The notes under the pieces: model-generated | The model's input: only the letters and a program-made list of their open reading frames with translations | What the model was told of the DNA's origin: nothing | Database searches by the model: none | Sequence record: LR756502.1 | Length of the DNA stretch: 64,000 nt | Strand: one strand, 5' to 3' | Program-made: the position numbers and the translations under genes | Shown: positions 5,167-61,108 of the stretch, piece by piece | Layout of the letters: the number at the start of each line of letters is the position of its first letter | Numbering within the stretch: position 1 is the stretch's first letter

Positions 5167-5175
5167 TATATATTA
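5167..5175 (-). promoter_or_regulatory. Putative late promoter TAATATATA
   Basis: 5 nt before ATG 5161. Confidence 0.7.
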
Positions 5176-5199
5176 TTATATTTTTATAATAATGAATAA

Positions 5200-5230
5200 A
5201 AAAAGAGACTAAAAAATTTAGTCTCTTTTT
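5200..5230 (-). terminator. Intrinsic terminator
   Basis: AAAAAGAGACTAAA-AAA-TTTAGTCTCTTTTT hairpin downstream of 5250..5723. Confidence 0.75.
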
Positions 5231-5249
5231 AAATAAGTTTAGTTATTGA

Positions 5250-5723: not shown

Positions 5724-5748
5724 GTGAATCTAATTATATTTTGTAACA

Positions 5749-5757
5749 TATATATTA
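5749..5757 (-). promoter_or_regulatory. Putative late promoter TAATATATA
   Basis: Upstream of 5723. Confidence 0.7.
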
Positions 5758-5802
5758 AAGCCATAAAGTCATTTTTTGATAATGTCTTAACTAATTAGTT
5801 TT

Positions 5803-5828: not shown

Positions 5829-5852
5829 ATAATACAAAAATAAATTAATAAT

Positions 5853-7391
5853 TTGTTAGTCGATACACAATATTTAACAAATAGTAAGCGATTGGTTGTA
5901 AGCTATGTTGATAAGACTGGTGATATAAAGCTCAAGTATTATGAGTGGGAAAATCCCATGAAATATATTACATGTGAGGACAATGATAAAGAAAAACACC
6001 CACAGTTTAGATCTTGGGATGGAAAATCTGTTAAACAAATTGAAGTAAATCATCCAGATAGATATGCTATTTATGAGTTTCTTGATTCTCTGCCTGAATC
6101 AGAAAGAGAAGAAATATTCGAATTTAATCTACCAAAAACATATTTTATTGATATAGAAACAGAGATAGTTGATGGGTTTCCAGAGGCTGCTGATGTTAAA
6201 GATGCTTTGGGTAATGTTATAAAAGAGGGAGCTTGTACAAAAGTTTTATCTGTATCAATTGTATATGATGATAAGATTATATTACTTGGATTAAAAGACA
6301 TGCCTGACGATATGCAGGAAAGAATACGTGTAAATACAAATAAATATTTTGAAAAATATAAATCGGATTATAAATTCAAGTACATAAAGTATGAGGATGA
6401 GTTTGATATGTTGTATGCTTTCTTCTACAAGATGGTCCCTAAAATGCCATTGATAACTGGGTGGAACTTCCTTAACTATGACTGGTTATATCTTGTTAAT
6501 CGTTCTAGAAAGATAAGTAAGTTTGTAAATGGTAGAGAATATAAAATAGATCCTGCAGTTTCTTCTTTAACAAAAAGACTTAATAAGATATGGTCTACTG
6601 AATTTGAAGTACCTGCTCATAGAATGATATTTGATTACATGCAGTTATATGAAGTGTGTGATACATCCATTAAGGTTAAGGAATCATCATCACTTGACTT
6701 CGTTTCTAGTAAGCTTGTTGGTGTTGAGAAGATTAAGTACACTGGATCATTACAGAAATTATATGAGGATGACTTTGAAACATTTATGTACTATAACGCG
6801 GTCGATTCGGTCTTAGTTCAAAAGATACATGAGTCCAGAAATTATATATCAATTATATATGCGATATCCGCCTTGGCTAAAATAAGAATTGTTGATGTTG
6901 TTTCTCAGATGAATAATGCTCTTGGATCACTCGCAATAACTGAGGGAGTTCTTCGAAATAGATTTAGGGAAATGGATAATATAGTTCTATTTAAGGGTGA
7001 AAAGTCTGATGGTGAAGCTACAATTGCTGGTGGTTGGGTTAAAGACCCGATTGTTGGTATGAATCAATGGTGTGTTACTTATGACTTTGCCTCACTTTAC
7101 CCAACCACACAAAGGCAATTTTTTATTGCTCCAGAAACATTTATTGGTGTTCGTGATGTTAAAAATCCTGAGTATTGTGATAACGGAAGAAAGATAGAAT
7201 TGGATAAGCATGTTATTTGTGTTAATGGTGTTGTCTTTGAAAAGAGACTATCTCCAACTTTAAGAATGCTTGAGGATGTCTATGCTGATAGAAAGAGGAA
7301 TAAAAATATTATGATGGATAAGAAGGATGAGCTTAAGAAGATAGAGGATGAAATTAAATCTATGGAACTTGAGCTAAATGGTTCTATTTAA
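5853..7391 (+). CDS. Family B DNA polymerase, N-terminal subunit (3'-5' exonuclease plus motif A) of a split enzyme
   Basis: TTG start; ExoI FIDIETE, ExoII GWNFLNYD, ExoIII YNAVD, motif A YDFASLYP; stops in the fingers before KxxxNSxYG and YGDTDS. Confidence 0.88.
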   Translation: MLVDTQYLTNSKRLVVSYVDKTGDIKLKYYEWENPMKYITCEDNDKEKHPQFRSWDGKSVKQIEVNHPDRYAIYEFLDSLPESEREEIFEFNLPKTYFIDIETEIVDGFPEAADVKDALGNVIKEGACTKVLSVSIVYDDKIILLGLKDMPDDMQERIRVNTNKYFEKYKSDYKFKYIKYEDEFDMLYAFFYKMVPKMPLITGWNFLNYDWLYLVNRSRKISKFVNGREYKIDPAVSSLTKRLNKIWSTEFEVPAHRMIFDYMQLYEVCDTSIKVKESSSLDFVSSKLVGVEKIKYTGSLQKLYEDDFETFMYYNAVDSVLVQKIHESRNYISIIYAISALAKIRIVDVVSQMNNALGSLAITEGVLRNRFREMDNIVLFKGEKSDGEATIAGGWVKDPIVGMNQWCVTYDFASLYPTTQRQFFIAPETFIGVRDVKNPEYCDNGRKIELDKHVICVNGVVFEKRLSPTLRMLEDVYADRKRNKNIMMDKKDELKKIEDEIKSMELELNGSI

Positions 7392-8209: not shown

Positions 8210-8229
8210 TATTTTTCCTTATTTTTAAT

Positions 8230-8238
8230 TATATATTA
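8230..8238 (-). promoter_or_regulatory. Putative late promoter TAATATATA
   Basis: Upstream of 8209. Confidence 0.65.
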
Positions 8239-8300: not shown

Positions 8301-9968
8301 ATGTCATTAAAAACAGATTTAGCCTTATATAAGCCACGAAAAGAACAAAAAGAAGCAATGAGTTTTATTGACTCTGAGTGGAAGCGTGATAAAACAAACA
8401 AATTTTTCCTACTTGATCTGCCTGTTGGTGTTGGTAAATCACACTTAGCTCTTATGATTGCTGATTGGTATCAAAAGAATGTTAGCAAGATGGCAAAGGT
8501 GGATATTATTACAAACAGTAAGCTTTTACAAGACCAGTACGCCGATACATATAGTTCTATTAATGATTTAAAAGGTAAAGAGAATTATGAATGTGAGACC
8601 TACTCTTGCTCTTGTGCGCAGGGTGCTGAGTTTAGTAGACTAAATAAGACGAATTGTGAATCCTGTCCTTATTCTGGAGCTCGTGAGTCATTTATTGCTG
8701 GTAATATATCACTAACTAATTTCTATCTTTATATATTATATGCTATCTATACACCTAAACTTCTTGAGTCAAGAGGAGCTAAAGTGCTTATAGTAGATGA
8801 ATCACATGAGTTTGATGATGTTATTTCCGACTTTGTTTCAATAAAAATAACTGAAAATACAATAAAGAGACTTAAGTTTTCAAATGAATCAGAAGTTATA
8901 AAGAAGTTCAAGTCGGTAAGTTCAATTAATGACTATGTTTCATTTCTAACATTTATTTCCGGTGAGATTATATCAACTATGGATGGTATGGAAAAAGGAC
9001 TTGGGTCACAATCTAGAAATGCTAGATCTGACCAAAGAGACCTTAAAATATCAAAGATACTTAAGGTTAAGAATACCGATATTAAGATAATGCAAAATAT
9101 AACTGACTTAAAACAAAATCAGTTAAAGATTGATATTTTCTTAAAAGAGTATAAGTCTAATCCAAATAACTGGGTACTTGAAACCGGATATAATGAGAAG
9201 TTAAAACAGAAGGAGTTATCGTTGGAGCCAATTTGGGCATATGACTACTTGGATAAGTATGTATTTAGTAACTATGATATGGTTTTTCTTATGTCTGGTA
9301 CAATTCTCGATAAGAATTTATTTTGTCAATTAAATGGTCTAGATGTTACAAAGGCTGTTTACTATTCGATAAGATCCCCATTTCCTGTTAAAAATAGGCC
9401 AATATATTATATGCCTGTTGGAAAAATGAGTTATAAGTTGAAAGAGGAAACATTCAAGAAATATATTCCTTATATAAATAAAATATTGACTAAGTATAAA
9501 AACCAAAAAGGTATTATACATACTAATTCTTTTGAGTTGGCTAACTGGATAAAGAAATCAATAAATGATCCAAGGTTGATCTTTCATGATTCATCAAATA
9601 AAGATGAGATGTTGAAGATGCATTTTGATTCAGAAGAACCAACTGTTATTGTTAGTCCTAGTATGGATACTGGTGTGTCTTTTGATCACGAGAGAAGTAG
9701 ATTTCAAATAATAGCGAAGATTCCCTATCCTAGTCTTGGCTCACAAAAGAATAAACTAAGGCAGAAAAATAATCCTGAGTGGTATCAGTGGAAGACTGTC
9801 ACTGGTATAGTTCAGATGACTGGTAGATCTGTTAGGTCTGAGACTGATTGGGCTGATACTATTATAATAGATGGATCTTTTTCGGATGTTATTAGATATA
9901 GTGGTCATCTTATACCAGACTGGATACAAGATGCTATATCAAAAGTAAATGTAAAAGAAAAGGCATAA
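8301..9968 (+). CDS. DinG/XPD-like SF2 helicase
   Basis: DLPVGVGKS, KGKENYEC plus Cys cluster, VDESH, MSGTI, QMTGRSVRS. Confidence 0.88.
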   Translation: MSLKTDLALYKPRKEQKEAMSFIDSEWKRDKTNKFFLLDLPVGVGKSHLALMIADWYQKNVSKMAKVDIITNSKLLQDQYADTYSSINDLKGKENYECETYSCSCAQGAEFSRLNKTNCESCPYSGARESFIAGNISLTNFYLYILYAIYTPKLLESRGAKVLIVDESHEFDDVISDFVSIKITENTIKRLKFSNESEVIKKFKSVSSINDYVSFLTFISGEIISTMDGMEKGLGSQSRNARSDQRDLKISKILKVKNTDIKIMQNITDLKQNQLKIDIFLKEYKSNPNNWVLETGYNEKLKQKELSLEPIWAYDYLDKYVFSNYDMVFLMSGTILDKNLFCQLNGLDVTKAVYYSIRSPFPVKNRPIYYMPVGKMSYKLKEETFKKYIPYINKILTKYKNQKGIIHTNSFELANWIKKSINDPRLIFHDSSNKDEMLKMHFDSEEPTVIVSPSMDTGVSFDHERSRFQIIAKIPYPSLGSQKNKLRQKNNPEWYQWKTVTGIVQMTGRSVRSETDWADTIIIDGSFSDVIRYSGHLIPDWIQDAISKVNVKEKA

Positions 9969-10440: not shown

Positions 10441-10449
10441 TATATATTA
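10441..10449 (-). promoter_or_regulatory. Putative late promoter TAATATATA
   Basis: Upstream of 10416. Confidence 0.7.
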
Positions 10450-10517: not shown

Positions 10518-10526
10518 TAATATATA
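10518..10526 (+). promoter_or_regulatory. Putative late promoter TAATATATA
   Basis: 4 nt before ATG 10531. Confidence 0.7.
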
Positions 10527-10530
10527 GTTT

Positions 10531-11313
10531 ATGAAAATACAGAGGTATAACGAACACTCATTATATTTATCAATGAGTGAGTATTTTATCGAATCATTGC
10601 AGTCTATTATTACTGAGTCTGAGAGCACTTCAAAGTATAAGGATATAGAGAAGAAAGTTATAAAGGATCTAAAGCTAAACCTTTCTATAGTTGGTACATT
10701 TGGTGCTGGTATATCTGTTATGTATCCAATTGTTGAGAAACTGGTTAGTAATATGGAGATCAATATTGATATCACCCCATCCAAGATTGTGTTATTGACA
10801 TTGGCCGCATTTTCAATTATTTACCTGGAAGAGAAAAAATCAAAGTTAGATTCCGACAAAGAGGCTGTTTTAAGAAAAGATTGTCAATCTATGTTAGAGG
10901 AGCTAAAAATGTCTGGAATTGGAAATGGTATTGTTAAGAAATTAATTGATGGATTTAAATCTATAAAGAATATATTTTCTCTAATAGGAAAGCATGCTGG
11001 TGCTATTGTTGGTGGATTTATTGATATGTTTGCATATGCATCCTTAGCAATGCCGATATTAAATGGTGTATTGGTGATTGTTGGTAAGTATGATTTGACA
11101 TTGGATAGTTTACCTGGTAATTTTCTTGGGTTAGCAACTGGTGTTGGTACAATAATTGCTAAACATGGAATAAGTGATATATTAAATAGAATGAAAGGAA
11201 AACTTCCATTCAATAAGAATAAAGTCATTGACGAAATCGATACTCCGATTATACAGAAGTTTGGTGACGCCGATATTGAACAAGACGGAAATTTAATCAA
11301 GGAAGAGCAGTAA
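10531..11313 (+). CDS. Hypothetical protein with hydrophobic segments, CTS-like N-terminus
   Basis: MKIQRYNE; TAATATATA 4 nt before ATG. Confidence 0.75.
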   Translation: MKIQRYNEHSLYLSMSEYFIESLQSIITESESTSKYKDIEKKVIKDLKLNLSIVGTFGAGISVMYPIVEKLVSNMEINIDITPSKIVLLTLAAFSIIYLEEKKSKLDSDKEAVLRKDCQSMLEELKMSGIGNGIVKKLIDGFKSIKNIFSLIGKHAGAIVGGFIDMFAYASLAMPILNGVLVIVGKYDLTLDSLPGNFLGLATGVGTIIAKHGISDILNRMKGKLPFNKNKVIDEIDTPIIQKFGDADIEQDGNLIKEEQ

Positions 11314-17271: not shown

Positions 17272-17832
17272 TTAATTGATTACTATTGGGTTTGTGTATA
17301 TATTAATTTCTAGTTCACGAAGTCTTCTAATCTTTGGTCCTTTTAAGATTCTTACTTTAAACGATAAGCTATCTGACATAGCCTGCTCTACCGTAGTATT
17401 GGAGAATCCAAGAAAAATAATATCCTCTTTTACTACTGTTAATCCTCTATAATTTGTGTATGTTCCTTTATATCTAAATTTACTTCGATCTATTTTTGCA
17501 TTTGGTATTTCATCCATCCTGAATTTTAGTTCACATAGAGCCGTCTTTATATCCGCTTCAAATTGATCACTGATATCACTCTTGTTCTTTATTACTAATG
17601 AAATGTGTAGGTATCTATAAGTATCAGATCCTTTTTTATAGTGGTCGTTAAATATTTCAACCTCAAATCCAAGATCTTGAAAGTCATGTAGTAAATATCC
17701 AATTTCTTCTCGAGTTGATTCAAGACTATCTATTGCTTTTAAATTTCTTTTTCTAGAATCGAGTAAATCATCATCTATTGAAGTATTTTTATCTACTCTA
17801 AAAAAATCTTTGAATTTCTTAACTATACCCAT
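17272..17832 (-). CDS. Hypothetical protein, CTS-like N-terminus
   Basis: MGIVKKFKDFF; TAATATATA 4 nt upstream. Confidence 0.75.
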   Translation of the reverse strand: MGIVKKFKDFFRVDKNTSIDDDLLDSRKRNLKAIDSLESTREEIGYLLHDFQDLGFEVEIFNDHYKKGSDTYRYLHISLVIKNKSDISDQFEADIKTALCELKFRMDEIPNAKIDRSKFRYKGTYTNYRGLTVVKEDIIFLGFSNTTVEQAMSDSLSFKVRILKGPKIRRLRELEINIYTNPIVIN

Positions 17833-17836: not shown

Positions 17837-17845
17837 TATATATTA
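17837..17845 (-). promoter_or_regulatory. Putative late promoter TAATATATA
   Basis: 4 nt before ATG 17832. Confidence 0.7.
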
Positions 17846-18637: not shown

Positions 18638-18646
18638 TATATATTA
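18638..18646 (-). promoter_or_regulatory. Putative late promoter TAATATATA
   Basis: Upstream of 18618. Confidence 0.7.
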
Positions 18647-18694
18647 AATTTATTCCTTTTCTGGAGGAAGTCATGAGGCAAGAATATATAAATC

Positions 18695-19412: not shown

Positions 19413-19421
19413 TAATATATA
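19413..19421 (+). promoter_or_regulatory. Putative late promoter TAATATATA
   Basis: Upstream of 19443. Confidence 0.65.
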
Positions 19422-20182: not shown

Positions 20183-20191
20183 TAATATATA
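20183..20191 (+). promoter_or_regulatory. Putative late promoter TAATATATA
   Basis: Upstream of structural gene 20213. Confidence 0.7.
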
Positions 20192-20212: not shown

Positions 20213-21796
20213 ATGCCAGCAACATTCAGTATAAATGTAGGTACTCCTACAGAATCAGCTAGAAAGCAAGACATCTATACTGTATTACAGGATATACCTG
20301 ATAATACTTCAAAACTAATAACACCAAGAGATGTCAGAGATGCTATATTTTCTGTTTGGGCCAATTCTGTTTTCAAACAGACCACTGGTACGTCATCTAT
20401 TGAATATATTGGAATTGATTCAAATAATCCTTCAAATAGAGATATTAAACAAAAAATATTCATTGGTAAAAGAAATTTCGGCGGAAATGATATAATGAAT
20501 AATTCTCTGCTATCTAGTTCAAATGAGACTGATATATTTCTATTCAATACTAAGTCTGATTCAACAACACAATCAGCTACTAAGATTTCAATACTATCCG
20601 GTACAGATTCTTCGTTATACGCATATGCTCCATATATAAAATCGGAGTTCATAAGTGATGGTGGTGTTGATAATATTGCATTGGATATAGTTAATCCATC
20701 TCTATTTGGTGGACCTATTAATATTTATAGTCCAAGTGGTAGAATTTCTATAAATAATATAATATTTCCAACAATTGCTGAGTCATCCGCATCCGCTTCG
20801 AACGGTAAAATACTTAGATATAGTGGTGTTTATCCAAATGGCTCACTTGTTTGGAGTAATGATACTGTTAGTATTGCTAATATTGGAGCAACTGGGTCAC
20901 CGACAAATATATTTGGTAGTCCTGTTCTAATAAATGGTTCACCGATGGTCTTTAGTGATGATACTCCACTTCCTTTACCTGTTGGTGGTCTTACACAAGG
21001 AAGTACATTTAGTGATGTTACTATTGTTGAAATGTTAAATAGAATACTTTATCCATATGTGCCTCCTGCTTTATCTTTATCACTAGTTAATAGTTCAGGA
21101 ACAACATATTCCGAATTTGGTACAACTGCCTCAATTGTTTTATCATATAGTATTACAAAGTATTCAGAGGATATATCAGATGCTTATATAGATGGTACAA
21201 CATTTTCTGGTATTACTTTTTCATCTTCACCTGGTGGTATTTTAAGCGGTACTTTGAGTGGGTCCACACATTCAGCTCTTATTGGGTCAAAAAGCTATGT
21301 TATGAAAGTATCTGATGATCCTGTTTGGTTATTTGCATCACATAGTGCAACTGCCTCACTTAATTTCGTTTATCCATCATTTTCTGGATTTAGTCCGGTT
21401 CCAATTTATGTTAGCCCATTATCTGGTTATGTTGCATCTACTCTTATAATGGCATCTAGTTCAATATCATCAAGAATTAGTATACCGTCACCTGGATCAC
21501 AATCAATATCAATATATTATAGTGGTAGTGGATATTTATTTTTTGCAATGCCCGAATCATATCCAGTTTTTAGATATGCTAAGGATCCTAATGGATACAT
21601 TATTCATGATTATGCTGATATATCATCCTCTGTGTTTTTTACCGGCACTCAGTCTAATAGCGTACCTTCATACCTAGGTCAATATCCTACAATAGTACCA
21701 ACTGGTGGTGGTCCAACATACTCACTTGCTGTTAGGTTTTGGGTAACAAACGCTACTTGTAGCTATCCTGGAGGTAATTTTGAATTTATATTCTAA
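20213..21796 (+). CDS. Ser/Thr-rich virion structural protein (paralog A)
   Basis: 527 aa, S/T/G rich; extensive similarity to next ORF; late promoter at 20183. Confidence 0.7.
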   Translation: MPATFSINVGTPTESARKQDIYTVLQDIPDNTSKLITPRDVRDAIFSVWANSVFKQTTGTSSIEYIGIDSNNPSNRDIKQKIFIGKRNFGGNDIMNNSLLSSSNETDIFLFNTKSDSTTQSATKISILSGTDSSLYAYAPYIKSEFISDGGVDNIALDIVNPSLFGGPINIYSPSGRISINNIIFPTIAESSASASNGKILRYSGVYPNGSLVWSNDTVSIANIGATGSPTNIFGSPVLINGSPMVFSDDTPLPLPVGGLTQGSTFSDVTIVEMLNRILYPYVPPALSLSLVNSSGTTYSEFGTTASIVLSYSITKYSEDISDAYIDGTTFSGITFSSSPGGILSGTLSGSTHSALIGSKSYVMKVSDDPVWLFASHSATASLNFVYPSFSGFSPVPIYVSPLSGYVASTLIMASSSISSRISIPSPGSQSISIYYSGSGYLFFAMPESYPVFRYAKDPNGYIIHDYADISSSVFFTGTQSNSVPSYLGQYPTIVPTGGGPTYSLAVRFWVTNATCSYPGGNFEFIF

Positions 21797-21798
21797 CT

Positions 21799-23259
21799 AT
21801 GCCAACATATAGTGTAAACATATCACAACCCACAGAGTCCACATCTTATATGGATATTGATTATATTATTAGTAAGTTGCCTGATAATACCGACAAGGAA
21901 ATAGATCCAAGAGACATTAGAGACGCTTCTATTTCTAATTGGGATGTCCCATCATTCAAGGAGACAAAGGCTACTGCTTCAACAATATCATATATTGGTA
22001 TTGATTCTGGTGATGCTGCTTATAGAGATGTGAAGTCGAAGATATTCTTTGGTAAAAGGGAGTTTAGCTCTAGTGAACTTATGAGCGTTTCATTATTATC
22101 ACCAACTATGAGTGATACTGATATATTTTTATTTAATACTAAGAAAGATTCAATATCTCAATTAAAAACAAGAATTTCTATACTAGCTGGAACCGATGCA
22201 TCTTTATATAGTGTTGCTCCATATTTGCAATCACAAACAGTTACTGGTACAGCTGGTCAGGTTTTATCTTTTGATATAGTTAACCCATCTGGTGGTGATA
22301 TATCAGTGACTAGTGACTATGGGACAGTATCACTAAATGGTATTATTTATCCAACCATTGTTGATACTGGATTATCTGCTTCTAGTAATAGAGTATTGAG
22401 GTATAATGATGGTCAATTATATTGGGATGATATTATAACAAACTTTTATGATACGGTTGGGACAAGTAGTTCTGTGTTGAATATATTTGGTACACCTGTT
22501 TTGATTAATGGATCACCAATTGAATTTACAAGTTCAAAGGAAACACCAGTTGCCTTTAATGGTGTTTCGATGGGTAGATCATTTGATAGTGCTGCTATAG
22601 TTGAGGTTTTAAGAGAGATATTATATCCTTATTTATCCCCACTTTGTACACTTAGTATAAATCAATCTGTGGCTGAATTTGGAACATTTCCATCAATCTC
22701 ACTAGATTATAGTGTAACTAAAAGAACACTTAGTGTTACAACTGTACTTAGTAATATGATACCCGGATCAATATCTCCAATAGTATCTAGTAGTAACGTG
22801 ACCGTATTTGGGTCAGCATCTGGTGTATACATATCAAATACTGATACTATATTTAAAATAACATCAAGTGATGGAACTCAATCCGCATCTGCATCACAGA
22901 CATTAAACTTCGTTTATCCTTACTTTTCTGGACTGCTTAGTAGTTCATCAATAGGATTTTCTGGACTATCCACATTGGATAAAATAGTGGATTCTCAAAA
23001 TGATCAGTTAGTTGGATTGATTGGATCTGGATATATTTACTTTATATATGATAATGACTATCCAGTTCTTAATAAAATATTGGCGGATGATATTGAAGTA
23101 TATGGTGCTAGTAGTAGTATGTCATCATTTACTCATAGTGTTGTTACACTAACATCACCGGATTGGCTTTGGGCCTCTCATCAGTTTAAGGTTTATAGAA
23201 GTATGACATCCTCATACTCTTTTATACCTCCTGCTGCAAATTATCAATTTAAGTACTAA
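21799..23259 (+). CDS. Ser/Thr-rich virion structural protein (paralog B)
   Basis: Shares PDNT.K.I.PRD.RDA, YIGIDS, TDIFLFNTK.DS, DIVNPS..GG with the previous ORF. Confidence 0.7.
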   Translation: MPTYSVNISQPTESTSYMDIDYIISKLPDNTDKEIDPRDIRDASISNWDVPSFKETKATASTISYIGIDSGDAAYRDVKSKIFFGKREFSSSELMSVSLLSPTMSDTDIFLFNTKKDSISQLKTRISILAGTDASLYSVAPYLQSQTVTGTAGQVLSFDIVNPSGGDISVTSDYGTVSLNGIIYPTIVDTGLSASSNRVLRYNDGQLYWDDIITNFYDTVGTSSSVLNIFGTPVLINGSPIEFTSSKETPVAFNGVSMGRSFDSAAIVEVLREILYPYLSPLCTLSINQSVAEFGTFPSISLDYSVTKRTLSVTTVLSNMIPGSISPIVSSSNVTVFGSASGVYISNTDTIFKITSSDGTQSASASQTLNFVYPYFSGLLSSSSIGFSGLSTLDKIVDSQNDQLVGLIGSGYIYFIYDNDYPVLNKILADDIEVYGASSSMSSFTHSVVTLTSPDWLWASHQFKVYRSMTSSYSFIPPAANYQFKY

Positions 23260-23264: not shown

Positions 23265-23273
23265 TAATATATA
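23265..23273 (+). promoter_or_regulatory. Putative late promoter TAATATATA
   Basis: 4 nt before ATG 23278. Confidence 0.7.
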
Positions 23274-25415: not shown

Positions 25416-25424
25416 TATATATTA
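25416..25424 (-). promoter_or_regulatory. Putative late promoter TAATATATA
   Basis: Upstream of 25406. Confidence 0.7.
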
Positions 25425-25830: not shown

Positions 25831-27756
25831 ATGAATTTACTGAATCTAATTAAGAAAAACTTTGAGTCTGAGATAAATGACTTATCTATTCAAGAGTATT
25901 TGAATATGTGTAAGAAGGACAAGAAGATATACTCATCTCCATCTGAGAGAATGTTAGAATCTATTGGTGAGCCTGAAGTAATAGAGACTGAGTTAGATGA
26001 AAGACTAAGCAGAATCTACTCAAATAAAATTATTAAAAGATATCCAGCTTTTGCTGAGTTCTATGGAATGGAAGAGACAATTGAACAGATTGTTTCATTC
26101 TTTAGACACGCGTCTCAGGGATTGGAGGAGAAGAAGCAAATACTTTACTTACTTGGTCCTGTTGGTGGTGGTAAGTCTTCACTGGCTGAGAGATTGAAGC
26201 AATTAATGGAGAGAAATTCAATCTATGTTCTTGTTTCTGACGCTGGTGAAGTTTCTCCTGTTTGGGAGAGTCCGCTTGGTTTATTTGTAAACTATAGAGC
26301 CGAATTAGAATCTGAGTATGGTATTGAAAAAAGATATATTCCTTCTTGTCCATCTCCTTGGGTCACAAAGAGATTACAAGAGTATAATGGTGATATAACA
26401 AAGTTTTCTGTTAGAAAAGTTAAGATGTCAATACAGTCACAAATTGGTATATCTAAAGTAGAACCAGGTGATGAGAATAATCAAGATATATCAGCACTTG
26501 TTGGTAAAGTAGATATTCGTAAACTTGCTGAGTTTCCACAAAATGATGCTGATGCTTATAATTACTCAGGATCTTTATGTAAGTCAAACCAAGGTCTTAT
26601 GGAGTTTGTTGAGATGTTTAAAGCACCTATAAAAGTATTACATCCTTTATTAACAGCTACTCAGGAGGGCAATTATAATGGAACTGAGGCTATACCAGCT
26701 ATTCCATTTCAGGGTATTATATTAGCCCACTCAAATGAGTCTGAGTGGGAGTCATTTTCTAATGATAAAAAGAATGAGGCTTTCCTTGATCGTGTTTATA
26801 TTGTAAGAGTTCCTTATTGTTTAAGAATTGCCGAGGAGGTTCAGATTTATAAAAAATTATTAAATAGCTCATCATTATCACAAGCTTCTTGTGCACCACA
26901 GACATTAGATTTACTAGCTCAGTTTTGTGTAATGACTAGAATGAAGAGACCGGAAAACTCATTATTATACTCTAAAATGAGGGTTTATAATGGTGAGAGT
27001 TTGAAGGAAAGTGATCCAAAGTCTAAATCACTACAAGAATATAAAGATGATGCTGGTATTGCTGAGGGTATGAATGGTATATCTACTAGATTTGCATTCA
27101 AAGTACTTTCTAAGGTATTTAATCATGATTCAGAAGAAGTAGCTGCTAATCCTGTACATTTATTCTATGTTCTTGAACAAGAAATTGTTAAGATACAAAT
27201 GCCAAAAGATGTTGAGGAGTACTATTTGAATATACTTAAGTCTACAATAACATCAAAATATGCTGATTTTATTGGAGATGAGATACAAAAGGCTTATGTT
27301 GATTCATATCAAGAGTATGGTCAAAATTTATTCGAAAGATATGTTACATACGCTGACCACTGGTGTCAAGATAATGATTTTCGTGATCCTGAAACTGCTC
27401 AGCAGTTTGATAGGGCTACTCTTAATGAAGAGTTGGAGAAAATTGAAAAACCAGCAGGTATTGCTAACCCAAAAGATTTCAGAAATGATGTTGTTCAATT
27501 TTATTTAAGACATAGAGCTAAAAATGGTAAATCTCCATCTTGGAATTCATATGAGAAAATTAAAAATGTAATAGAAAAAAGAATCTTCTCAAAAACAGAA
27601 GATCTTATTCCAGTTATATCGTTTACGAGTAAAGCATCAAAAGATGAAGAAAAGAAACATAGTGAGTTCATTAATAGAATGAAGGAAAGAGGATATACTA
27701 GAAAGCAAATAAAGTTACTTACTGATTGGTATTTAAGAATTAGAAAGTCATCCTAA
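25831..27756 (+). CDS. prkA: PrkA/YeaG family AAA+ protein (annotated serine kinase)
   Basis: YGMEETIEQIV, LLGPVGGGKSS, EPGDENNQDIS, EFVEMFKA, AHSNESEW, AFLDR. Confidence 0.95.
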   Translation: MNLLNLIKKNFESEINDLSIQEYLNMCKKDKKIYSSPSERMLESIGEPEVIETELDERLSRIYSNKIIKRYPAFAEFYGMEETIEQIVSFFRHASQGLEEKKQILYLLGPVGGGKSSLAERLKQLMERNSIYVLVSDAGEVSPVWESPLGLFVNYRAELESEYGIEKRYIPSCPSPWVTKRLQEYNGDITKFSVRKVKMSIQSQIGISKVEPGDENNQDISALVGKVDIRKLAEFPQNDADAYNYSGSLCKSNQGLMEFVEMFKAPIKVLHPLLTATQEGNYNGTEAIPAIPFQGIILAHSNESEWESFSNDKKNEAFLDRVYIVRVPYCLRIAEEVQIYKKLLNSSSLSQASCAPQTLDLLAQFCVMTRMKRPENSLLYSKMRVYNGESLKESDPKSKSLQEYKDDAGIAEGMNGISTRFAFKVLSKVFNHDSEEVAANPVHLFYVLEQEIVKIQMPKDVEEYYLNILKSTITSKYADFIGDEIQKAYVDSYQEYGQNLFERYVTYADHWCQDNDFRDPETAQQFDRATLNEELEKIEKPAGIANPKDFRNDVVQFYLRHRAKNGKSPSWNSYEKIKNVIEKRIFSKTEDLIPVISFTSKASKDEEKKHSEFINRMKERGYTRKQIKLLTDWYLRIRKSS

Positions 27757-27899
27757 TGACTCAATATTATTTAGATACTAGGGGTTATAAGAATATTTAT
27801 GGATACCCGGCTCTTTTTGCCTACTATACTAAGATAGATAGTAGAAGGAAAAAAATTAGAAAAATCAAAAAATTACTAGATGGGTATAAATATAGTTGA
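27756..27899 (+). CDS. 47-aa basic micro-protein (not in ORF track)
   Basis: TAATG overlap with prkA stop; MTQYYLDTRGYKNIYGYPALFAYYTKIDSRRKKIRKIKKLLDGYKYS. Confidence 0.55.
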   Translation: MTQYYLDTRGYKNIYGYPALFAYYTKIDSRRKKIRKIKKLLDGYKYS

Positions 27900-30025: not shown

Positions 30026-30034
30026 TATATATTA
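30026..30034 (-). promoter_or_regulatory. Putative late promoter TAATATATA
   Basis: Upstream of 30005. Confidence 0.7.
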
Positions 30035-31580: not shown

Positions 31581-31589
31581 TATATATTA
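31581..31589 (-). promoter_or_regulatory. Putative late promoter TAATATATA inside a hairpin loop
   Basis: 5 nt before ATG 31575; flanked by CCCATAAGA/TCTTATGGG. Confidence 0.7.
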
Positions 31590-32585: not shown

Positions 32586-32594
32586 TAATATATA
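32586..32594 (+). promoter_or_regulatory. Putative late promoter TAATATATA
   Basis: Upstream of 32620. Confidence 0.7.
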
Positions 32595-36501: not shown

Positions 36502-37186
36502 CTTGTTTTTGTAGTATCTTATATATCAAGTATGCGTCATTAACATCTTCATATGGTTTTGGTATTGTTAAGATTGAAACAACATCACTCTTAGATAGTT
36601 TACAATGTTTTGACCAAGAATCATTGAATTCATTATTTTCGACAATCGCCATAAACATGTGATTTTTCTTAAAAGATCCACCTGATATCCCTTCATTATT
36701 CTTAAATACTAACTTAGGCTTTTTCTTACCAATGTCTATTGGGGTATATGATAGTTTACAAGTCTCTAGCTTCAATGTTGATGGTGATAGCACCGTTATA
36801 TCCTGTGTTAATTGGTCCCATAGTTTCTTTCTCAATAAAGTTGAAAACGTAACAAGATCAATGATATCCCCTGCTGAACTAGCAAAACTATATCCTTCGA
36901 TTCCAACTTTTGTTGGCTTTGTGTGATCGATATTATCAAATATATCCTTTAGAATCATATCTGATATAGTATCATAGTCTTTTAGCTTTGTCAACTCTCC
37001 CTCTGAGTAGTCTTTGAAATCACGAAATTCTATAAATCGGTAGGTGATGTGTTCTTCGGCCATCTTAAACCACTTAGTCATTCCGGTCTTACCGTATACT
37101 TTAGATTCTCTACAGTAGTTGAAAATCTTTCCATTAACTACAAGAGCTGTTGATATTAAACTTGGATCTAACGCGATTATATTCAT
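36488..37186 (-). CDS. RuvC-like Holliday junction resolvase
   Basis: IIALDPSL, GIEGYSF, SPSTLK, EDVNDAY acidic tetrad. Confidence 0.8.
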   Translation of the reverse strand: MNIIALDPSLISTALVVNGKIFNYCRESKVYGKTGMTKWFKMAEEHITYRFIEFRDFKDYSEGELTKLKDYDTISDMILKDIFDNIDHTKPTKVGIEGYSFASSAGDIIDLVTFSTLLRKKLWDQLTQDITVLSPSTLKLETCKLSYTPIDIGKKKPKLVFKNNEGISGGSFKKNHMFMAIVENNEFNDSWSKHCKLSKSDVVSILTIPKPYEDVNDAYLIYKILQKQETQS

Positions 37187-37216
37187 ATCACTATCTATTA
37201 AATATTATCTGCTTCT

Positions 37217-37716: not shown

Positions 37717-37725
37717 TATATATTA
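37717..37725 (-). promoter_or_regulatory. Putative late promoter TAATATATA
   Basis: Upstream of 37708. Confidence 0.7.
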
Positions 37726-41002: not shown

Positions 41003-41039
41003 TTTATAAATTTATTTTTATACTTTATATATAAAAAAA

Positions 41040-41090: not shown

Positions 41091-41110
41091 TAACTTTTTA
41101 TATATAGAAT

Positions 41111-42775: not shown

Positions 42776-42784
42776 TATATATTA
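42776..42784 (-). promoter_or_regulatory. Putative late promoter TAATATATA
   Basis: 4 nt before ATG 42771. Confidence 0.7.
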
Positions 42785-46950: not shown

Positions 46951-46959
46951 TAATATATA
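46951..46959 (+). promoter_or_regulatory. Putative late promoter TAATATATA
   Basis: 4 nt before ATG 46964. Confidence 0.7.
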
Positions 46960-46963: not shown

Positions 46964-47446
46964 ATGATTAAATTTTCAAATATGATAAATGAGGATAAAT
47001 CTAGTTCTAAGTTTAAGCTAGGATTGGATCTGCATGGTGTGGTTGATTCAATGCCAAAGGAGTTTTCATTTTTAACAAATGCTATAGTTTCTGCTGGTGG
47101 TGAAGTTCACATATTGACTGGTGGATCCTGGACTGAAGAACTAGAAGGTCAAATAAAATCATATGGTATAGTTTGGACCAATCATCTATCTGTATATGAT
47201 TATCTAATTGAAACTGGAGCAGAGACTACTGGTGAGATTCAATTTCCTGATGGAACCATACAAAAGAAATTTAATGATGGTGCTTGGGACAAGATCAAAG
47301 CTGATTATTGTAGGGATAATAAAATATCACTACACATTGATGATACATTAATATATAATGACTTCTTTACAACCCCTTTCGCTAGGTTGTGGACACACAG
47401 TAATAACCCAAAAGCTCCTCACAAGGACGTTAGACACTTAGATTAA
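46964..47446 (+). CDS. HAD-like (5'-nucleotidase-type) protein, CTS-like N-terminus
   Basis: MIKFSNMINE; LGLDLHGVVD, ILTG, LHIDD. Confidence 0.65.
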   Translation: MIKFSNMINEDKSSSKFKLGLDLHGVVDSMPKEFSFLTNAIVSAGGEVHILTGGSWTEELEGQIKSYGIVWTNHLSVYDYLIETGAETTGEIQFPDGTIQKKFNDGAWDKIKADYCRDNKISLHIDDTLIYNDFFTTPFARLWTHSNNPKAPHKDVRHLD

Positions 47447-49422: not shown

Positions 49423-49454
49423 TTTGGTTATTTGATATAAATTCCTTATATTTG
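49423..49454 (+). promoter_or_regulatory. Bacteroidota primary-sigma promoter
   Basis: TTTG-N20-TATATTTG. Confidence 0.85.
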
Positions 49455-49471: not shown

Positions 49472-50113
49472 ATGATGAACTACGACTCTTATAGATACAT
49501 CTATCCACCACGTCCAAAAAATGCAATACCATCTGATGAATTATCTGTTTGGGATAATGATACACTCATAGGTCAACCAAAATTAAATGGATCTAACTGC
49601 GTTATTTTCACTAATGGTGAAAGATTCAGAGTAATGAATAGACATGATCAAACATTAACCAACTTTCGTATAAATACTGATGAAATACTTAATATATACA
49701 AGTGTAAGAAAGGTGAATGGATGGCTATCAATGGTGAATATATGAATAAGTCCAAAATGGATGAGAGTGGTAAGGTTTTTAACCACAAGTTTGTTATTTT
49801 TGACATCCTTGTTCAGGATTCTAAATATTTGGTTGGTAGTACGTTTGAGGATAGAATACTTCTAATGGATGATCTTTATAATACCAAAGATTCTGATAAG
49901 GATTATCTTTATGAGATTTCTGAAAACATCTACCGAGTTAAATCGTATAATAACAACTTTAAATTTATTTTCGATAAATTAACACCAATTGATATGATTG
50001 AGGGTTTGGTTATGAAAAGAAAGAATGCTAAATTGGAGCTTGGATCTACTGAGAATAATAATATTAAGTCTCAGATTAAATGTAGGAAGGCTACTAAAAA
50101 TTATAAATACTAA
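49472..50113 (+). CDS. ATP-dependent ligase-type nucleotidyltransferase (adenylation domain only)
   Basis: Motif I QPKLNGS, III INGEY, IIIa VIFDIL, IV EGLVMK, V IKCRK. Confidence 0.8.
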   Translation: MMNYDSYRYIYPPRPKNAIPSDELSVWDNDTLIGQPKLNGSNCVIFTNGERFRVMNRHDQTLTNFRINTDEILNIYKCKKGEWMAINGEYMNKSKMDESGKVFNHKFVIFDILVQDSKYLVGSTFEDRILLMDDLYNTKDSDKDYLYEISENIYRVKSYNNNFKFIFDKLTPIDMIEGLVMKRKNAKLELGSTENNNIKSQIKCRKATKNYKY

Positions 50114-50391: not shown

Positions 50392-50400
50392 TAATATATA
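50392..50400 (+). promoter_or_regulatory. Putative late promoter TAATATATA
   Basis: Directly after a terminator, upstream of 50420. Confidence 0.7.
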
Positions 50401-52237: not shown

Positions 52238-52269
52238 TTTGGTGTATTGGTATATTATCCTTATATTTG
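52238..52269 (+). promoter_or_regulatory. Bacteroidota primary-sigma promoter
   Basis: TTTG-N20-TATATTTG. Confidence 0.85.
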
Positions 52270-52297
52270 TAATAGATAAAATTATATTTAAACTAAA

Positions 52298-53832: not shown

Positions 53833-53836
53833 ACAC

Positions 53837-53845
53837 TATATATTA
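53837..53845 (-). promoter_or_regulatory. Putative late promoter TAATATATA
   Basis: 4 nt before ATG 53832. Confidence 0.7.
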
Positions 53846-55673: not shown

Positions 55674-55745
55674 TAAGGAATTTCTTTTTTTTATATATTG
55701 TATTACTTACTTTACCTTTATATGCTAATCAGAAAGATAAAGTTT

Positions 55746-55754
55746 TAATATATA
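55746..55754 (+). promoter_or_regulatory. Putative late promoter TAATATATA
   Basis: Heads the operon with the giant virion gene. Confidence 0.7.
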
Positions 55755-55991: not shown

Positions 55992-55992
55992 G

Positions 55993-58900: not shown

Positions 58901-61083
58901 CACTTCCACTTGGATCATTAACATCATCAACTATATGGTTTGAATCGAATGGTATGACCTATTCTGGTGGGGCTTTTAGCTTACCGGTTAATAAGATTTA
59001 CTTTGGTACAGATTTAAGTTTAGAATGGGAAAGTATATTTATAAATACGTTTGTTGATATTACTATACATGGAACATCAGACTATCAAACAGATAAGCTA
59101 TTTGTTATGAATAAGTATTATGACTCTTCATATGACGCATATGTTATTGAATTTCATAAGAGACTTAGTTATACTCTTGGTGATTCTGGTATACTTGGTG
59201 GTAGTGGTACGATGGATATAACATCAAGAAGAACATTACAGCAAATAAGCGATGACTTACAAGAGTTAAATAACTTACAAAGAACTAAGGGTGTTAGTAG
59301 AGAAATTCAAACTGGATTCTCATATACAAACTATGAGAATGAATTAAACTTTAAGTTTCCAACAGATTCTTATGCTAAGATATTACTATCAGATGCTAAT
59401 ACTATTAAAGAGTTAAGTGCTTTGATATACATTGACTATAAGAATGAGTTGGCAATGAATATAACAAGACTGGAGATAGAGTATGAAATACCTATATTTA
59501 ATACATTTAACTTTGGTGGTAATCTTTATGTATCTTGTTCACAGAAACATGACCTTATAGATGGTGATGGTGTTGTATTGGAATTTACTGGTGGTACTGG
59601 TTCTTCTCAACAACTAAATCAACAGTACTTTGGTTATCATGTTGTTACTGTTGTTAATAACTATGATTTTGTATTGGATGTTGCTTATGGTGCTATACCA
59701 ACTGTTGGTAATGATATTGGTATTGTTAAACATATTAAAAAGGATCCATTCTTAAACTACTCTCCTGTTGATATTATTGATATTGGTGTTGATAAGAAGG
59801 GTAAGAGGTCAATAATATTGGGACCTGAAAATGTACAACTTACTGGATCGACATATAAGTTAGTTGATGTTGATTATACGAAGTATAGATTCAGATTAAT
59901 TGATGGTATGAACATTGATATATTAAATTCTAAATATCCTTGGATACTTGAGGCGGAGATAGAAGATGCTATAATTGGTATGGATTCGTCTCAGTCGTTA
60001 ATATGGTATACTGGTATTTGGGAGTGTGGTCGTTGGTTTGGTGGAACTTGGAAGTCAGGAACTTGGAAGTCAGGTGATTGGTATGGTGGTGTTTGGGAGT
60101 CCAAATCAATAACTGATAAACTTTTGACGGTTGCGGTTGATAATGTTACTACCAATAACTCATATTCGAATTGGTTTGATGGTCGTTGGTTTGGTGGTAC
60201 TTGGTCGGGTGGTAACTGGTTCAATGGTAGATGGTATGGTGGTGATTGGAAGACAGGTAACTGGTATAATGGAATTTGGAATGACGGTAACTGGAGAGAT
60301 GGTAGTTTTGTTGGTGGTATATGGGTACTTGGTCAATGGGATAATGGAATTTTTAATACTGATAATAGACCATCTTATTGGTTAGATGGTAAGTGGTATG
60401 GTGGTGACTTTGAAAATGGTATGTGGTATAATGGTATTTTTGATCAGAAAAATGGTAAGAAGTCCAGGTTTGGCACAAATGCATATAATAGTAGAACAGC
60501 TACTTGGCATGGTGGTAAGTGGGTAACTGGTGAATTCCATTCTAGGTTAAATACAAATGATGATGGATATCCAGATGTTTCTGATACTCATAAGTTTTCT
60601 ATTTGGTATACTGGTATATGGTCATCAGGTAATTGGTATGGTGGGATAGCATATGATATTGACTTTAGATCAGGTACTTGGCATGGTGGTATCCTTGATG
60701 ATATTCAAGTTATTGGAGTTGATACAACTAATAATACATTTACTATGAATGGTATATTTAAGTATAACATTGGTGATGATTTACATATAATTGATAACCA
60801 AATTGGTGGTACATACTCTGTTTATGGTAGTAATACAATACCTGGTAGATATAGTGTATTATATACTGTAGAAGATAGTGTAAATAAGTGGACAACTGTT
60901 TATGTTGCTACTGATCTATCAAGCGCTAGTGCTAGTGCTCCATTAAATACTGATATAAGAGTGGTTAGCAGCTTTAGAGGATCTAATTGGAAGTCTGGTA
61001 TTTGGACAAATGGACTATTTGAAAATGGTCTATGGGAAGGTGGTATTTGGTATAATGGTGTTTTTAATGGAACTTGGTCATAA
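55993..61083 (+). CDS. Giant virion structural protein (1696 aa) with BNR-like propeller repeats and WxxGx repeat C-terminus
   Basis: RVLVKNQ; TDDGGKTW; dozens of W-x-x-G-x units from about 60001. Confidence 0.75.
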   Translation: MWNINKDTSKWSMTTDSLPKDTFDVLKQELSKLRFYSKCLSGATFIPMNNVDDVYDILGQYEPKNWYVSSPYSVTSIPPQYASAISSTSSTEYYTKYLGEYGLTLKNLFTPTKLIKDSINNYIYVDVATIVSLDNIGETVIGLTIDGVRLKEGHRVLVKNQKTNVVLSNVIDPSTYFQSNYYVVEDLGLTIEYEYYNEDNGVYIFKNNVLVRESDLDSYETCMRYSISVKLGVINREKQYHLSRLLNGYFPTTSDNNPIEFSEKHNWMLRNRVDYNNLFEINYYDVIKNGTHSYQLDGVTYSIPERTISVGEFGVILNNQEGLSNIIPNKYKVNLRGISQTTTDYWVCGDDGTLLKLRKHDFELTKVDADCSCGSLKKVISPINSISFFNDLRGAAVGDLNVILLTDDGGKTWDRLRIGEFDAYTYNKVIYSTLDTFYVGGDTGVFIEFTFSSGEWIAHKRRVAKYIDSDDEYILVEDINDMYETSITSWGLSYSYSTQSTSSDKDLLMLVTNNGNLVAYDVNDFIPEFDFLYLDFGQNYGDIRSITRKDNTNDFYFSSENIYSFDINNFNYITSSQSNIISSTYSASLISSVYINEMYDYKGEELIICGNTSLLKSATYSIVSFNDIDITFNDKLRSKMLFMDYDIGGKLNFFDDSQNYRMPVSVTFSGSSFSAGTYSYLSFTELVYGPTSPSFITVTESNWLTYWSDRQKTFEYYSLAPLDETTKVKMSTTFSYYPSATSSTSMYFTSSVVATGYTDIQPLAPLIRNKTLGRFYNAGTASITAPSVLYSVFLYDYLMVVKTSNTNPTQVGDVLRFESDVVDGDFIVNKMVNISTDNYYYLFTEFNQAIINQIKASSLPMSITNLNKYKDVDELYDRFNLHPISKAYEMSYSTSSSIVEISPLFNNYTSYYNLATNVISTGDLYTMSYTEGFLDFGYKPTYNILSYLERLNPDVFFGIKEYLSMPIYNALPLGSLTSSTIWFESNGMTYSGGAFSLPVNKIYFGTDLSLEWESIFINTFVDITIHGTSDYQTDKLFVMNKYYDSSYDAYVIEFHKRLSYTLGDSGILGGSGTMDITSRRTLQQISDDLQELNNLQRTKGVSREIQTGFSYTNYENELNFKFPTDSYAKILLSDANTIKELSALIYIDYKNELAMNITRLEIEYEIPIFNTFNFGGNLYVSCSQKHDLIDGDGVVLEFTGGTGSSQQLNQQYFGYHVVTVVNNYDFVLDVAYGAIPTVGNDIGIVKHIKKDPFLNYSPVDIIDIGVDKKGKRSIILGPENVQLTGSTYKLVDVDYTKYRFRLIDGMNIDILNSKYPWILEAEIEDAIIGMDSSQSLIWYTGIWECGRWFGGTWKSGTWKSGDWYGGVWESKSITDKLLTVAVDNVTTNNSYSNWFDGRWFGGTWSGGNWFNGRWYGGDWKTGNWYNGIWNDGNWRDGSFVGGIWVLGQWDNGIFNTDNRPSYWLDGKWYGGDFENGMWYNGIFDQKNGKKSRFGTNAYNSRTATWHGGKWVTGEFHSRLNTNDDGYPDVSDTHKFSIWYTGIWSSGNWYGGIAYDIDFRSGTWHGGILDDIQVIGVDTTNNTFTMNGIFKYNIGDDLHIIDNQIGGTYSVYGSNTIPGRYSVLYTVEDSVNKWTTVYVATDLSSASASAPLNTDIRVVSSFRGSNWKSGIWTNGLFENGLWEGGIWYNGVFNGTWS

Positions 61084-61099
61084 ATTCGACCTATAATAT

Positions 61100-61108
61100 T
61101 AATATATA
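61100..61108 (+). promoter_or_regulatory. Putative late promoter TAATATATA
   Basis: 4 nt before ATG 61113. Confidence 0.7.

Follow-up and report, generated by a model that had tools for sequence, protein, structure and literature searches.

The DNA considered here (the window; 64,000 nucleotides [nt]) corresponds to bases 248,001 to 312,000 of sequence record LR756502.1, an unannotated record of 642,428 bp that represents the genome of an uncultured phage and is among the four largest genomes of Al-Shayeb et al. 2020 (PMC7162821). All genomes of >634 kb were assigned to the Mahaphage clade, and Bacteroidetes hosts were predicted (PMC7162821). The subject of this analysis is a nine-nucleotide element, TAATATATA, that recurs upstream of open reading frames (ORFs) and is a candidate late promoter. 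The whole record was analyzed alongside the window, for statistical power and for a search of the transcription machinery. The genome has a G+C content of 31% and carries genes on both strands; a crude gene call (genetic code 11) gave 887 genes, a coding fraction of 91%, and 57 kb of intergenic DNA (9% of the genome). The gap is the number of nucleotides between the end of the motif and the start codon; gaps of 4 to 9 nt form the short class and gaps of 16 to 32 nt the long (leadered) class.

The window holds 25 exact copies of TAATATATA, compared with 6.68 ± 2.51 expected from dinucleotide shuffles (none of 100 shuffles reached 25). An initial annotation of the sequence had counted about 22 intergenic copies facing start codons, and 22 of the 25 indeed lie 4 to 27 nt upstream of an ORF start and are oriented toward it; the other three (8730−, 47349+, and 49690+) fall within coding sequence. 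Exact copies and accepted variants are listed below with their strand, the length of the encoded protein in amino acids (aa), and, for some, the arrangement at the orthologue in the related genome LR745206.1.

5167-5175 (−): TAATATATA, 5 nt before ATG 5161 (503 aa, function unassigned); short gap
5749-5757 (−): TAATATATA, 25 nt before ATG 5723 (157 aa); leadered
8230-8238 (−): TAATATATA, 20 nt before ATG 8209 (61 aa); leadered
8730-8738 (−): exact copy, antisense within helicase ORF 8301-9968; probably no promoter
10441-10449 (−): TAATATATA, 24 nt before ATG 10416 (137 aa); LR745206.1 orthologue, gap 26
10518-10526 (+): TAATATATA, 4 nt before ATG 10531 (260 aa); orthologue, gap 5, N terminus MKIQRY in both
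17297-17305 (−): TAATATATA, 27 nt before ATG 17269 (279 aa, methyltransferase-like); LR745206.1 orthologue, gap 4
17837-17845 (−): TAATATATA, 4 nt before ATG 17832 (186 aa)
18638-18646 (−): TAATATATA, 19 nt before ATG 18618 (256 aa)
18682-18690 (+): variant GAATATATA, 4 nt before ATG 18695 (DNA methylase, 236 aa); LR745206.1, TAATATATA, gap 5
19413-19421 (+): TAATATATA, 21 nt before ATG 19443 (133 aa)
20183-20191 (+): TAATATATA, 21 nt before ATG 20213 (527 aa, conserved huge-phage family); its paralogue 21799 is next
23265-23273 (+): TAATATATA, 4 nt before ATG 23278 (482 aa); orthologue, TTATATATA, gap 4
25416-25424 (−): TAATATATA, 9 nt before ATG 25406 (227 aa); LR745206.1, also gap 9
30026-30034 (−): TAATATATA, 20 nt before ATG 30005 (182 aa, DUF5856/phrog_858, "starvation-inducible transcriptional regulator")
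31581-31589 (−): TAATATATA, 5 nt before ATG 31575 (380 aa); LR745206.1, gap 5
32586-32594 (+): TAATATATA, 25 nt before ATG 32620 (98 aa), first in a same-strand series that includes 32913 and the ankyrin ORF 34386
37192-37200 (−): variant TAATAGATA, 5 nt before ATG 37186 (232 aa, RuvC-like resolvase)
37717-37725 (−): TAATATATA, 8 nt before ATG 37708 (163 aa)
41026-41034 (−): variant TTATATATA, 23 nt before ATG 41002 (UvsX/RecA-like, 408 aa); LR745206.1, TAATATATA, gap 22
41098-41106 (+): variant TTATATATA, 4 nt before ATG 41111 (238 aa)
42776-42784 (−): TAATATATA, 4 nt before ATG 42771 (82 aa, N terminus MNHLKKF); LR745206.1, gap 7
46951-46959 (+): TAATATATA, 4 nt before ATG 46964 (160 aa); LR745206.1, gap 4
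47349-47357 (+): exact copy within ORF 46964-47446, next start 91 nt on; doubtful
49690-49698 (+): exact copy within ORF 49472-50113; doubtful
50392-50400 (+): TAATATATA immediately 3′ of a hairpin and T-run, 19 nt before GTG 50420 (NUDIX, 190 aa)
53837-53845 (−): TAATATATA, 4 nt before ATG 53832 (70 aa); LR745206.1, gap 4 and the same N terminus
55692-55700 (−): variant CAATATATA, 18 nt before ATG 55673 (270 aa); LR745206.1, TAATATATA, gap 19
55746-55754 (+): TAATATATA, 21 nt before GTG 55776 (71 aa), followed by a 1,696-aa ORF at 55993
61100-61108 (+): TAATATATA, 4 nt before ATG 61113 (128 aa)

Fifteen genes of the window belong to the short-gap class. The nine exact cases for which the initial annotation gave gaps of 4 to 5 nt hold, with 4 nt at 10531, 17832, 23278, 42771, 46964, 53832, and 61113 and 5 nt at 5161 and 31575, and all nine genes start with ATG; the variant arrangement described at 37186 (−), TAATAGATA followed by 5 nt and ATG, is also present.

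Over the whole genome we counted 211 exact copies; intergenic DNA holds 179 of these, compared with 11 to 30 predicted by Markov models. At 4 to 9 nt before called starts there are 103 copies, compared with a median of 2 for the 126 nine-mers made of five A and four T, and the runners-up among those composition-matched words are shifted forms of TAATATATA itself; in reverse orientation, two copies lie at a short gap. A systematic single-mismatch scan of the genome replaced an iterative refinement of a position weight matrix, which was dropped when it converged on exact copies only. Single-mismatch variants proved to be nearly absent from promoter positions, the tolerated exceptions being any base at position 1, T at position 2, and A at position 6; given this pattern of tolerance, the core of the motif is AATATATA, usually with TT before it. 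Information content is restricted to TT-AATATATA, with a weak A-rich patch about 17 to 20 nt upstream and no −35 partner, and the flanks beyond the motif are not conserved among copies.

Could the pattern be an artifact of AT-rich composition, of duplications that carried upstream sequence with them, or of ORF calling? The genome is AT rich, its largest paralogue family (20 members) supplies 10 of the 141 short-gap genes, and in-frame TAA or TAG codons at gap-4 promoters could bias calls of the "first ATG after a stop" kind. Chance is nevertheless excluded by the shuffled and composition-matched controls; the flanks differ among copies, so paralogy explains little and accounts for at most a small part of the short-gap genes; and a bias toward stops would not fix the ATG at 4 to 5 nt, and the N termini of orthologues agree. 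We give an artifact next to no credence, as it is refuted by the shuffle, composition, flank, and orthologue controls. The observation is real and far beyond chance.

The distance from motif to start is bimodal, with 4 nt as the commonest gap and an almost empty zone at 10 to 15 nt. Exact copies number 50 at a gap of 4 nt, 21 at 5, 16 at 6, 9 at 7, 5 at 8, 2 at 9, and 1 at 10; there are none at 11 to 16 nt and 55 at 17 to 28 nt. No exact copy has a gap of 0 to 3 nt, and two at −1 overlap the called start. When accepted variants are included, the genome has 142 short-gap, 3 middle, and 81 long-gap genes. Start codons in 141 short-gap genes are ATG in 137 cases, GTG in 4, and TTG in none, and the first T of the motif lies 13 to 18 nt before the ATG in 133 to 142 genes, most often at 13. 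The first base of the spacer is A or G in 68% of short-gap promoters. At gap-4 promoters with A or G in this place, an in-frame TAA or TAG stands two codons before the ATG (TAATATA-TAG-TTT-ATG), as at 10518-10533 of the window; such a stop could halt ribosomes coming from upstream.

The genomic setting of the motif is that of a transcription signal. A same-strand upstream neighbor is found for 50% of motif genes compared with 85% of others, the median intergenic distance is 38 to 63 nt compared with 6 nt, and a hairpin with a T-run lies just upstream in 15 to 17% compared with 1%. Operon-internal genes do not carry the motif, and the intergenic distance is <15 nt for 58% of the genes without it. 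In these respects the motif behaves as a promoter heading transcription units and not as a ribosome-binding site. We weighed against this the idea that it acts in the RNA, as a non-Shine-Dalgarno (non-SD) ribosome-binding or enhancer element contacted by ribosomal protein S1 or a phage factor. The short gaps resemble the spacing from an SD sequence to its start; SD-like words are depleted genome-wide (before 6.9% of starts versus 13.5% in controls) and leaders are A rich, the pattern of Bacteroidetes (PMC6847099); and huge phages without SD sequences often encode S1-like proteins (PMC7162821). About one-third of the copies, however, lie 16 to 32 nt from the start, too distant for a ribosome-binding site; operon-internal genes would need such a site too, yet do without the motif; copies are concentrated at strand switches and behind terminators; and one gene has a gap of 27 nt versus 4 nt in two relatives. 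With the likeness of the motif to the phage T4 late element TATAAATA, its tracking of T4-late orthologues, and a gp55 homologue in the genome (all described below) also against it, we find an RNA-level element very improbable.

Genes with the motif have a late character. In PHROG searches, motif genes of ≥200 aa (n = 98) matched tail sheath, portal, four tail-fiber families, a tail protein, three endolysin families, and a peptidase, and also a topoisomerase subunit, UvsX, HNH nucleases, and a methyltransferase. The 201 genes scored as being without the motif matched methyltransferases, ribonucleotide reductase, RNA and DNA ligases, helicases, polymerases, and the clamp loader, and also sugar-nucleotide enzymes, tRNA nucleotidyltransferase, terminase, and head protease. 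Terminase, head protease, and the Gp23-family capsid gene (Pfam E = 3.7e-28) carry C/GAATATATA 21 to 30 nt upstream. With T4 proteins as probes to define late and early/middle orthologues, 9 of 11 late orthologues had the motif (gp5, gp13, gp15, gp17, gp18, gp20, gp21, gp23, and gp25, but not gp3 or gp4), compared with 2 of 18 early/middle ones (Fisher P = 2.5e-4). Within the window, enzymes with the motif are the RuvC-like protein 37186, the NUDIX protein 50420, and the methyltransferases 17269 and 18695, while ThyA, a family-B DNA polymerase fragment, an XPD-like helicase, gp41/DnaB, ribonucleotide reductase, and PrkA/DUF444 are encoded without it.

The ORFs at 20213, 23278, and 55776/55993, which the initial annotation had taken for structural genes, do have the motif upstream, but the structural label found no backing in Pfam, PHROG, or PDB sequence matches. 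Specifically, ORFs 20213, 21799, 23278, 55993, and 5161 have no Pfam or PHROG match and 31575 has no Pfam match, and PDB sequence searches of the putative structural ORFs of the window gave nothing useful. An AlphaFold model of 20213 built with 37 homologues was usable for residues 260 to 527 only (mean predicted local distance difference test score, 60), and Foldseek searches with it returned generic immunoglobulin-like/CARDB folds only, for the C-terminal half. The region 20213-23259 (+) holds tandem paralogues of 527 and 486 aa whose C-terminal half is modeled as a beta-sandwich; large phage contigs carry >400 relatives of the 20213 family, at about 50% identity and all unnamed.

A gp55-like sigma factor, which the initial annotation expected elsewhere in the genome, is encoded outside the window at 217,128 to 217,493 of the record. 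This 121-aa protein has a single PHROG match, phrog_234 "late sigma transcription factor" (E = 9.7e-6), and matches a hidden Markov model of 120 gp55 relatives at E = 5e-5; when its family was compared with the gp55 family by hhalign, the probability was 92% (E = 5e-7), and the blocks YxNNKxLY and NF(D/N)ExKxxNxxAYxT were common to both. The gene is set among T4-core genes (gp25, gp44, gp15, gp4, portal, protease, and capsid) and has no late motif upstream. Single-sequence phmmer searches with T4 gp55, gp45, gp33, AsiA, and MotA found nothing, gp55 being recovered with a profile; clamp-loader homologues are present in the genome. Across its 120 best database relatives, which lie on contigs of all sizes up to 641 kb, the gp55-like family keeps at least 79% identity. 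The capsid protein is far less conserved (51 to 76% among the four closest genomes and 36% in LR756500). Since neither the DFDGD motif of multisubunit RNA polymerases nor T7-type motifs (HDS[FYW] and motif B) were found in the proteome, host RNA polymerase is likely the enzyme. With a lone AT-rich element, an association with late genes, and a gp55-family sigma factor all in evidence, the suggestion of a diverged gp55-type late promoter is borne out, and we regard this reading as well supported.

A second class of putative promoters stands in front of other genes. The word TATATTTG, which fits the Bacteroidetes sigmaA −7 box TAnnTTTG, shows a 12- to 17-fold enrichment in the long intergenic regions that precede genes without the late motif (33 of 178). 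Two such boxes lie in the window:

49447-49454: TATATTTG, before 49472
52262-52269: TATATTTG, before 52298

A copy of TAATAGATA at 52270-52278 directly overlaps the second of these, was regarded as a chance occurrence, and was left out of the list of late sites. The TATATTTG boxes are probably early promoters for host RNA polymerase and, judged by their sequence, would lend independent support to a Bacteroidetes host; their separate placement supports a host-type program distinct from the late one.

The arrangement is retained in close relatives. In LR745206.1, whose capsid protein is 76% identical (DNA, about 66%), the motif occurs 24 times in 44 kb, and the orthologues keep the motif and mostly the spacing class too, while the spacer sequence diverges. 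In nine short-gap orthologue pairs with differing spacers, the proteins align from residue 1 (seven pairs), residue 3/4 (one), or residue 6/7 (one); this alignment from the N terminus supports the called ATGs. Gene 17269 (−) is the one with a gap of 27 nt here and of 4 nt in LR745206.1, with conserved N termini, a switch which indicates that leadered and abutting arrangements interconvert in evolution. AATATATA is the top upstream word in LR756504, and two further genomes, LR756501 (735 kb) and LR756500 (462 kb), use it at long gaps. No enrichment of AATATATA was seen in the 25 kb examined of Tenacibaculum phage PTm1, a cultured phage related through its capsid protein, and Lak-B1 has mainly (A)ATAAATA-like words at a long gap; given these two results, the short-gap architecture looks confined to the lineage of LR756502, LR745206, and LR756504. 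The nearest laboratory systems are cultured jumbo phages of Tenacibaculum, Chryseobacterium, and Flavobacterium, whose capsid proteins are 25 to 28% identical.

We propose that (T)TAATATATA, with the core AATATATA, would be the late promoter of the LR756502.1 megaphage, most likely read by host RNA polymerase carrying the phage gp55-family sigma factor, and that transcription would most likely start about 5 nt after the motif. Where the ATG follows at 4 to 9 nt (about 140 genes), the mRNA would then be leaderless or have a leader of at most about 4 nt; where it lies 16 to 32 nt away (about 80 genes), the mRNA would carry a 12- to 28-nt A-rich leader without an SD sequence, as is usual in Bacteroidetes. 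We consider this scheme as a whole probable. The reader of the motif, the start position, and the leaderless translation of the short class are each inferred from sequence, and an AUG-proximal start that would make short-gap transcripts leaderless or nearly so is our best inference.

The position of the start is suggested by several features. The T4 late octamer occupies −13 to −6 (PMC1524935). Applied to AATATATA in alignment with TATAAATA, this geometry has transcription begin six bases beyond the motif, which in gap-5 genes would be the A of the ATG; the gap-4 spacing implies a start at or before the fifth base, which shortens the T4 geometry by 1 nt. In long-gap promoters, A is found at the fifth base after the motif in 83% of cases, versus about 50 to 70% at most neighboring positions (the 10th base also reaches 80%), and T is frequent at the fourth. 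A start at the fifth base fits the lower limit of 4 nt, the predominance of gap 4, the A at that base, and the T before it. Computationally, leaderless genes have as their accepted signature a −10-like box located about 12 nt upstream of the start codon (PMC3160421), and the near-empty zone at 10 to 15 nt matches the known dichotomy between leaderless mRNAs and leaders long enough for a ribosome.

Several observations weigh against this scheme. As to the reader, the gp55-like protein is short (121 aa compared with 185) and covers the N-terminal two-thirds of gp55 only; the missing C-terminal third carries the clamp-binding tail in T4 gp55. The co-activator gp33 and the clamp gp45, both of which diverge fast, were among the proteins not found by single-sequence phmmer, and the UvsX-like and gp52-like orthologues, of the early/middle class, carry the TTATATATA variant. 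The truncation and the two undetected partners would suit a promoter read by some other factor, whether host sigmaA acting through an extended −10 element, another phage sigma factor or activator, or a phage RNA polymerase that escaped detection, the family-library scans having covered part of the proteome only. With TAATAT placed 7 nt before the ATG, the motif also fits the TAnnnT pattern of bacterial leaderless genes (PMC3160421). But the separate enrichment of TAnnTTTG at other genes argues for two promoter classes, the nine positions of the late motif are nearly invariant, unlike those of a sigma70 −10 box, no RNA polymerase catalytic motifs were found in the proteome, and the gp55-like family is strongly conserved. 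We leave another factor a slim chance and keep the gp55-family protein as the most likely reader.

As to the start, strict T4 geometry sets +1 on the U of the AUG at gap 4, which concerns 64 genes (PMC1524935), and gaps of 5 to 8 nt show no preference for A at the fifth base. Leaders exceed 10 nt in 87% of transcripts of Flavobacterium johnsoniae (PMC6847099), and from these leader lengths the host phylum is not known to favor leaderless mRNAs. For half of the short-gap genes, the preceding gene runs in the same direction, so that translation of read-through transcripts is possible, and a terminator-like hairpin intervenes in only 15%. The motif might thus be a late promoter whose short-gap genes are not expressed from leaderless mRNAs. 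Leadered transcripts that read through or initiate upstream could serve these genes, with the AU-rich motif as an unstructured SD-free context, or transcription could start inside the first codons and a downstream start codon be used; Bacteroidetes ribosomes do initiate on A/U-rich leaders without SD sequences, leaderless mRNAs being a minority in F. johnsoniae (PMC6847099). The half of the short-gap genes that lack a co-directional upstream neighbor, however, stand at strand switches, where an upstream same-strand transcript is impossible; the pile-up at 4 nt and the empty zone at 10 to 15 nt go unexplained unless the distance from promoter to ATG is selected; and orthologues align from residue 1 in spite of spacer divergence, which argues against downstream starts. 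On balance we think it unlikely that the short-gap genes are expressed in these other ways, and we retain leaderless or near-leaderless transcripts for them.

Leaderless synthesis of abundant virion proteins, as proposed in the initial annotation, was not borne out. The identified major virion proteins sit in the leadered class, with gaps of 29 nt for capsid, 19 nt for portal, 27 nt for sheath, 21 nt for terminase, and 30 nt for prohead protease, and leaderless expression is consequently not shown for them. Short-gap genes encode mostly small proteins without an assigned function (median, 186 aa), together with gp5-, gp25-, and gp15-like tail parts. Immediately downstream of the capsid gene, at 229,253 to 229,942 of the record, a short-gap late promoter precedes the gene for a 229-aa NFACT-R RNA-binding protein; NFACT-R is a domain of the ribosome-quality-control type. 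It is conceivable, although we hold this view tentatively, that the distance from promoter to ATG sets two modes of late translation, in which >100 genes are leaderless and high-copy virion proteins keep A-rich leaders of 12 to 28 nt. If so, leader length would be a built-in dosage control, host transcriptomes would greatly understate how active leaderless initiation is in phage-infected Bacteroidetes, and phage-encoded translation factors would perhaps assist such initiation.

Many short-gap products share an N-terminal peptide. A sequence of the MK[H/Y]LKx[Y/F]xxFES type opens 111 of the 887 predicted proteins, which are otherwise unrelated; examples in the window are 42771 (−), MNHLKKFDEG, and 10416 (−), MKLRYLKTFENF. 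Many of these genes form tandem arrays at 10 to 100 kb, and the peptide occurs in 52 of 141 short-gap late genes versus 59 of 746 others (odds ratio, 6.8; P = 5e-17). Synonymous codon variation suggests selection on the peptide itself. Its "IFE|S" resembles the T4 prohead-protease site (L/I)xE, so it may be a capsid-targeting propeptide of head-internal proteins, and many short-gap products with the MKHLKxYxxFES peptide may, on this resemblance, be head-internal cargo.

Two further loci in the window deserve mention. At 25831-29142 (+), a PrkA serine kinase (AAA_PrkA plus PrkA) is followed by a DUF444 protein, with no late motif; the two correspond to the bacterial yeaG/yeaH-type stress pair, and Enterobacter phage LAU1 has a similar annotated YeaG gene. 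The family-B DNA polymerase homologue at 5853-7391 (+) has only 512 aa, comprising the exonuclease domain and the beginning of the polymerase domain, and matches T4 gp43; the polymerase may be split.

The set of about 220 late promoters is a regulatory map for an uncultured phage and its relatives, on which the host-type TAnnTTTG class marks other genes and the late regulon holds well over 100 proteins of unassigned function; for annotation, the motif fixes the start codons of about 140 genes. In extending the T4 gp55 paradigm of late transcription to Bacteroidetes megaphages, it brings a new consensus and a shortened sigma factor. The scheme predicts that about one gene in six would be expressed from mRNA that is leaderless or nearly so, in a phylum in which most mRNAs have leaders and no SD sequences; if true, this matters for the understanding of initiation by Bacteroidetes ribosomes and of the control of protein dosage in huge phages. 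A literature search by motif string returned no paper on the motif or on the abutting architecture in Mahaphages. Diverged gp55 consensus sequences are already known, and predicting leaderless mRNAs from promoter-adjacent starts is standard practice; the new variant is that about 16% of the genes of a predicted Bacteroidetes phage have a late promoter abutting the ATG.

The closest parallel is phage T4 itself, whose late promoters are read by gp55 with gp33 and the gp45 clamp. In both phages, a lone, highly conserved AT-rich element of 8 to 9 bp without a −35 partner precedes late-gene orthologues, and both genomes encode a member of the gp55 family; with their 3′ ends aligned, the core AATATATA and TATAAATA agree at 6 of 8 positions. 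LR756502.1 shares the T4 core genes gp4, gp5, gp13, gp15, gp17, gp18, gp20, gp21, gp23, and gp25, and further gp32, gp41, gp43, gp44, gp46, gp47, UvsX, and UvsW. The consensus differs. Canonical TATAAATA is not enriched before starts in the mahaphage loci examined, with 0 to 3 copies per locus versus 4 to 10 for AATATATA at a long gap. The megaphage motif would have to lie about 1 nt closer to the transcription start for gap-4 genes to keep their AUG, and the megaphage sigma factor has 121 aa. T4 late mRNAs carry leaders with SD sequences, whereas the megaphage lacks SD sequences and about two-thirds of its promoters abut the ATG. Among T4-like phages, the late consensus drifts with diverged gp55, from CTAAATA in Aeh1 to a variable −13 in RB49, KVP40, and S-PM2 (PMC1524935); those phages infect Proteobacteria or cyanobacteria, and the abutting architecture is not reported for them.

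Large phages with leaderless later transcripts have a possible precedent in Thermus phage phiYS40, whose middle and late transcripts reportedly start at the AUG. It differs in that its host is itself rich in leaderless genes and its promoters are of the host-sigma and not of the gp55 type. Leaderless genes of bacteria (Actinobacteria and Deinococcus-Thermus) offer a second comparison: at gap 4 the first T of TAATAT lies 13 nt before the ATG, and ATG starts, bimodal leader lengths, and the inferential logic are the same (PMC3160421, PMC12340547). The bacterial box is TAnnnT, in contrast to the phage-specific and fully conserved 9-mer here, and, unlike bacterial leaderless boxes, the megaphage motif serves a temporal class of phage genes. 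Most leaders in the predicted host phylum exceed 10 nt (PMC6847099). With the sigmaA promoters and SD-independent translation of Bacteroidetes, the megaphage has in common A-rich, SD-free leaders and TATATTTG boxes; its late motif forms a separate sequence class.

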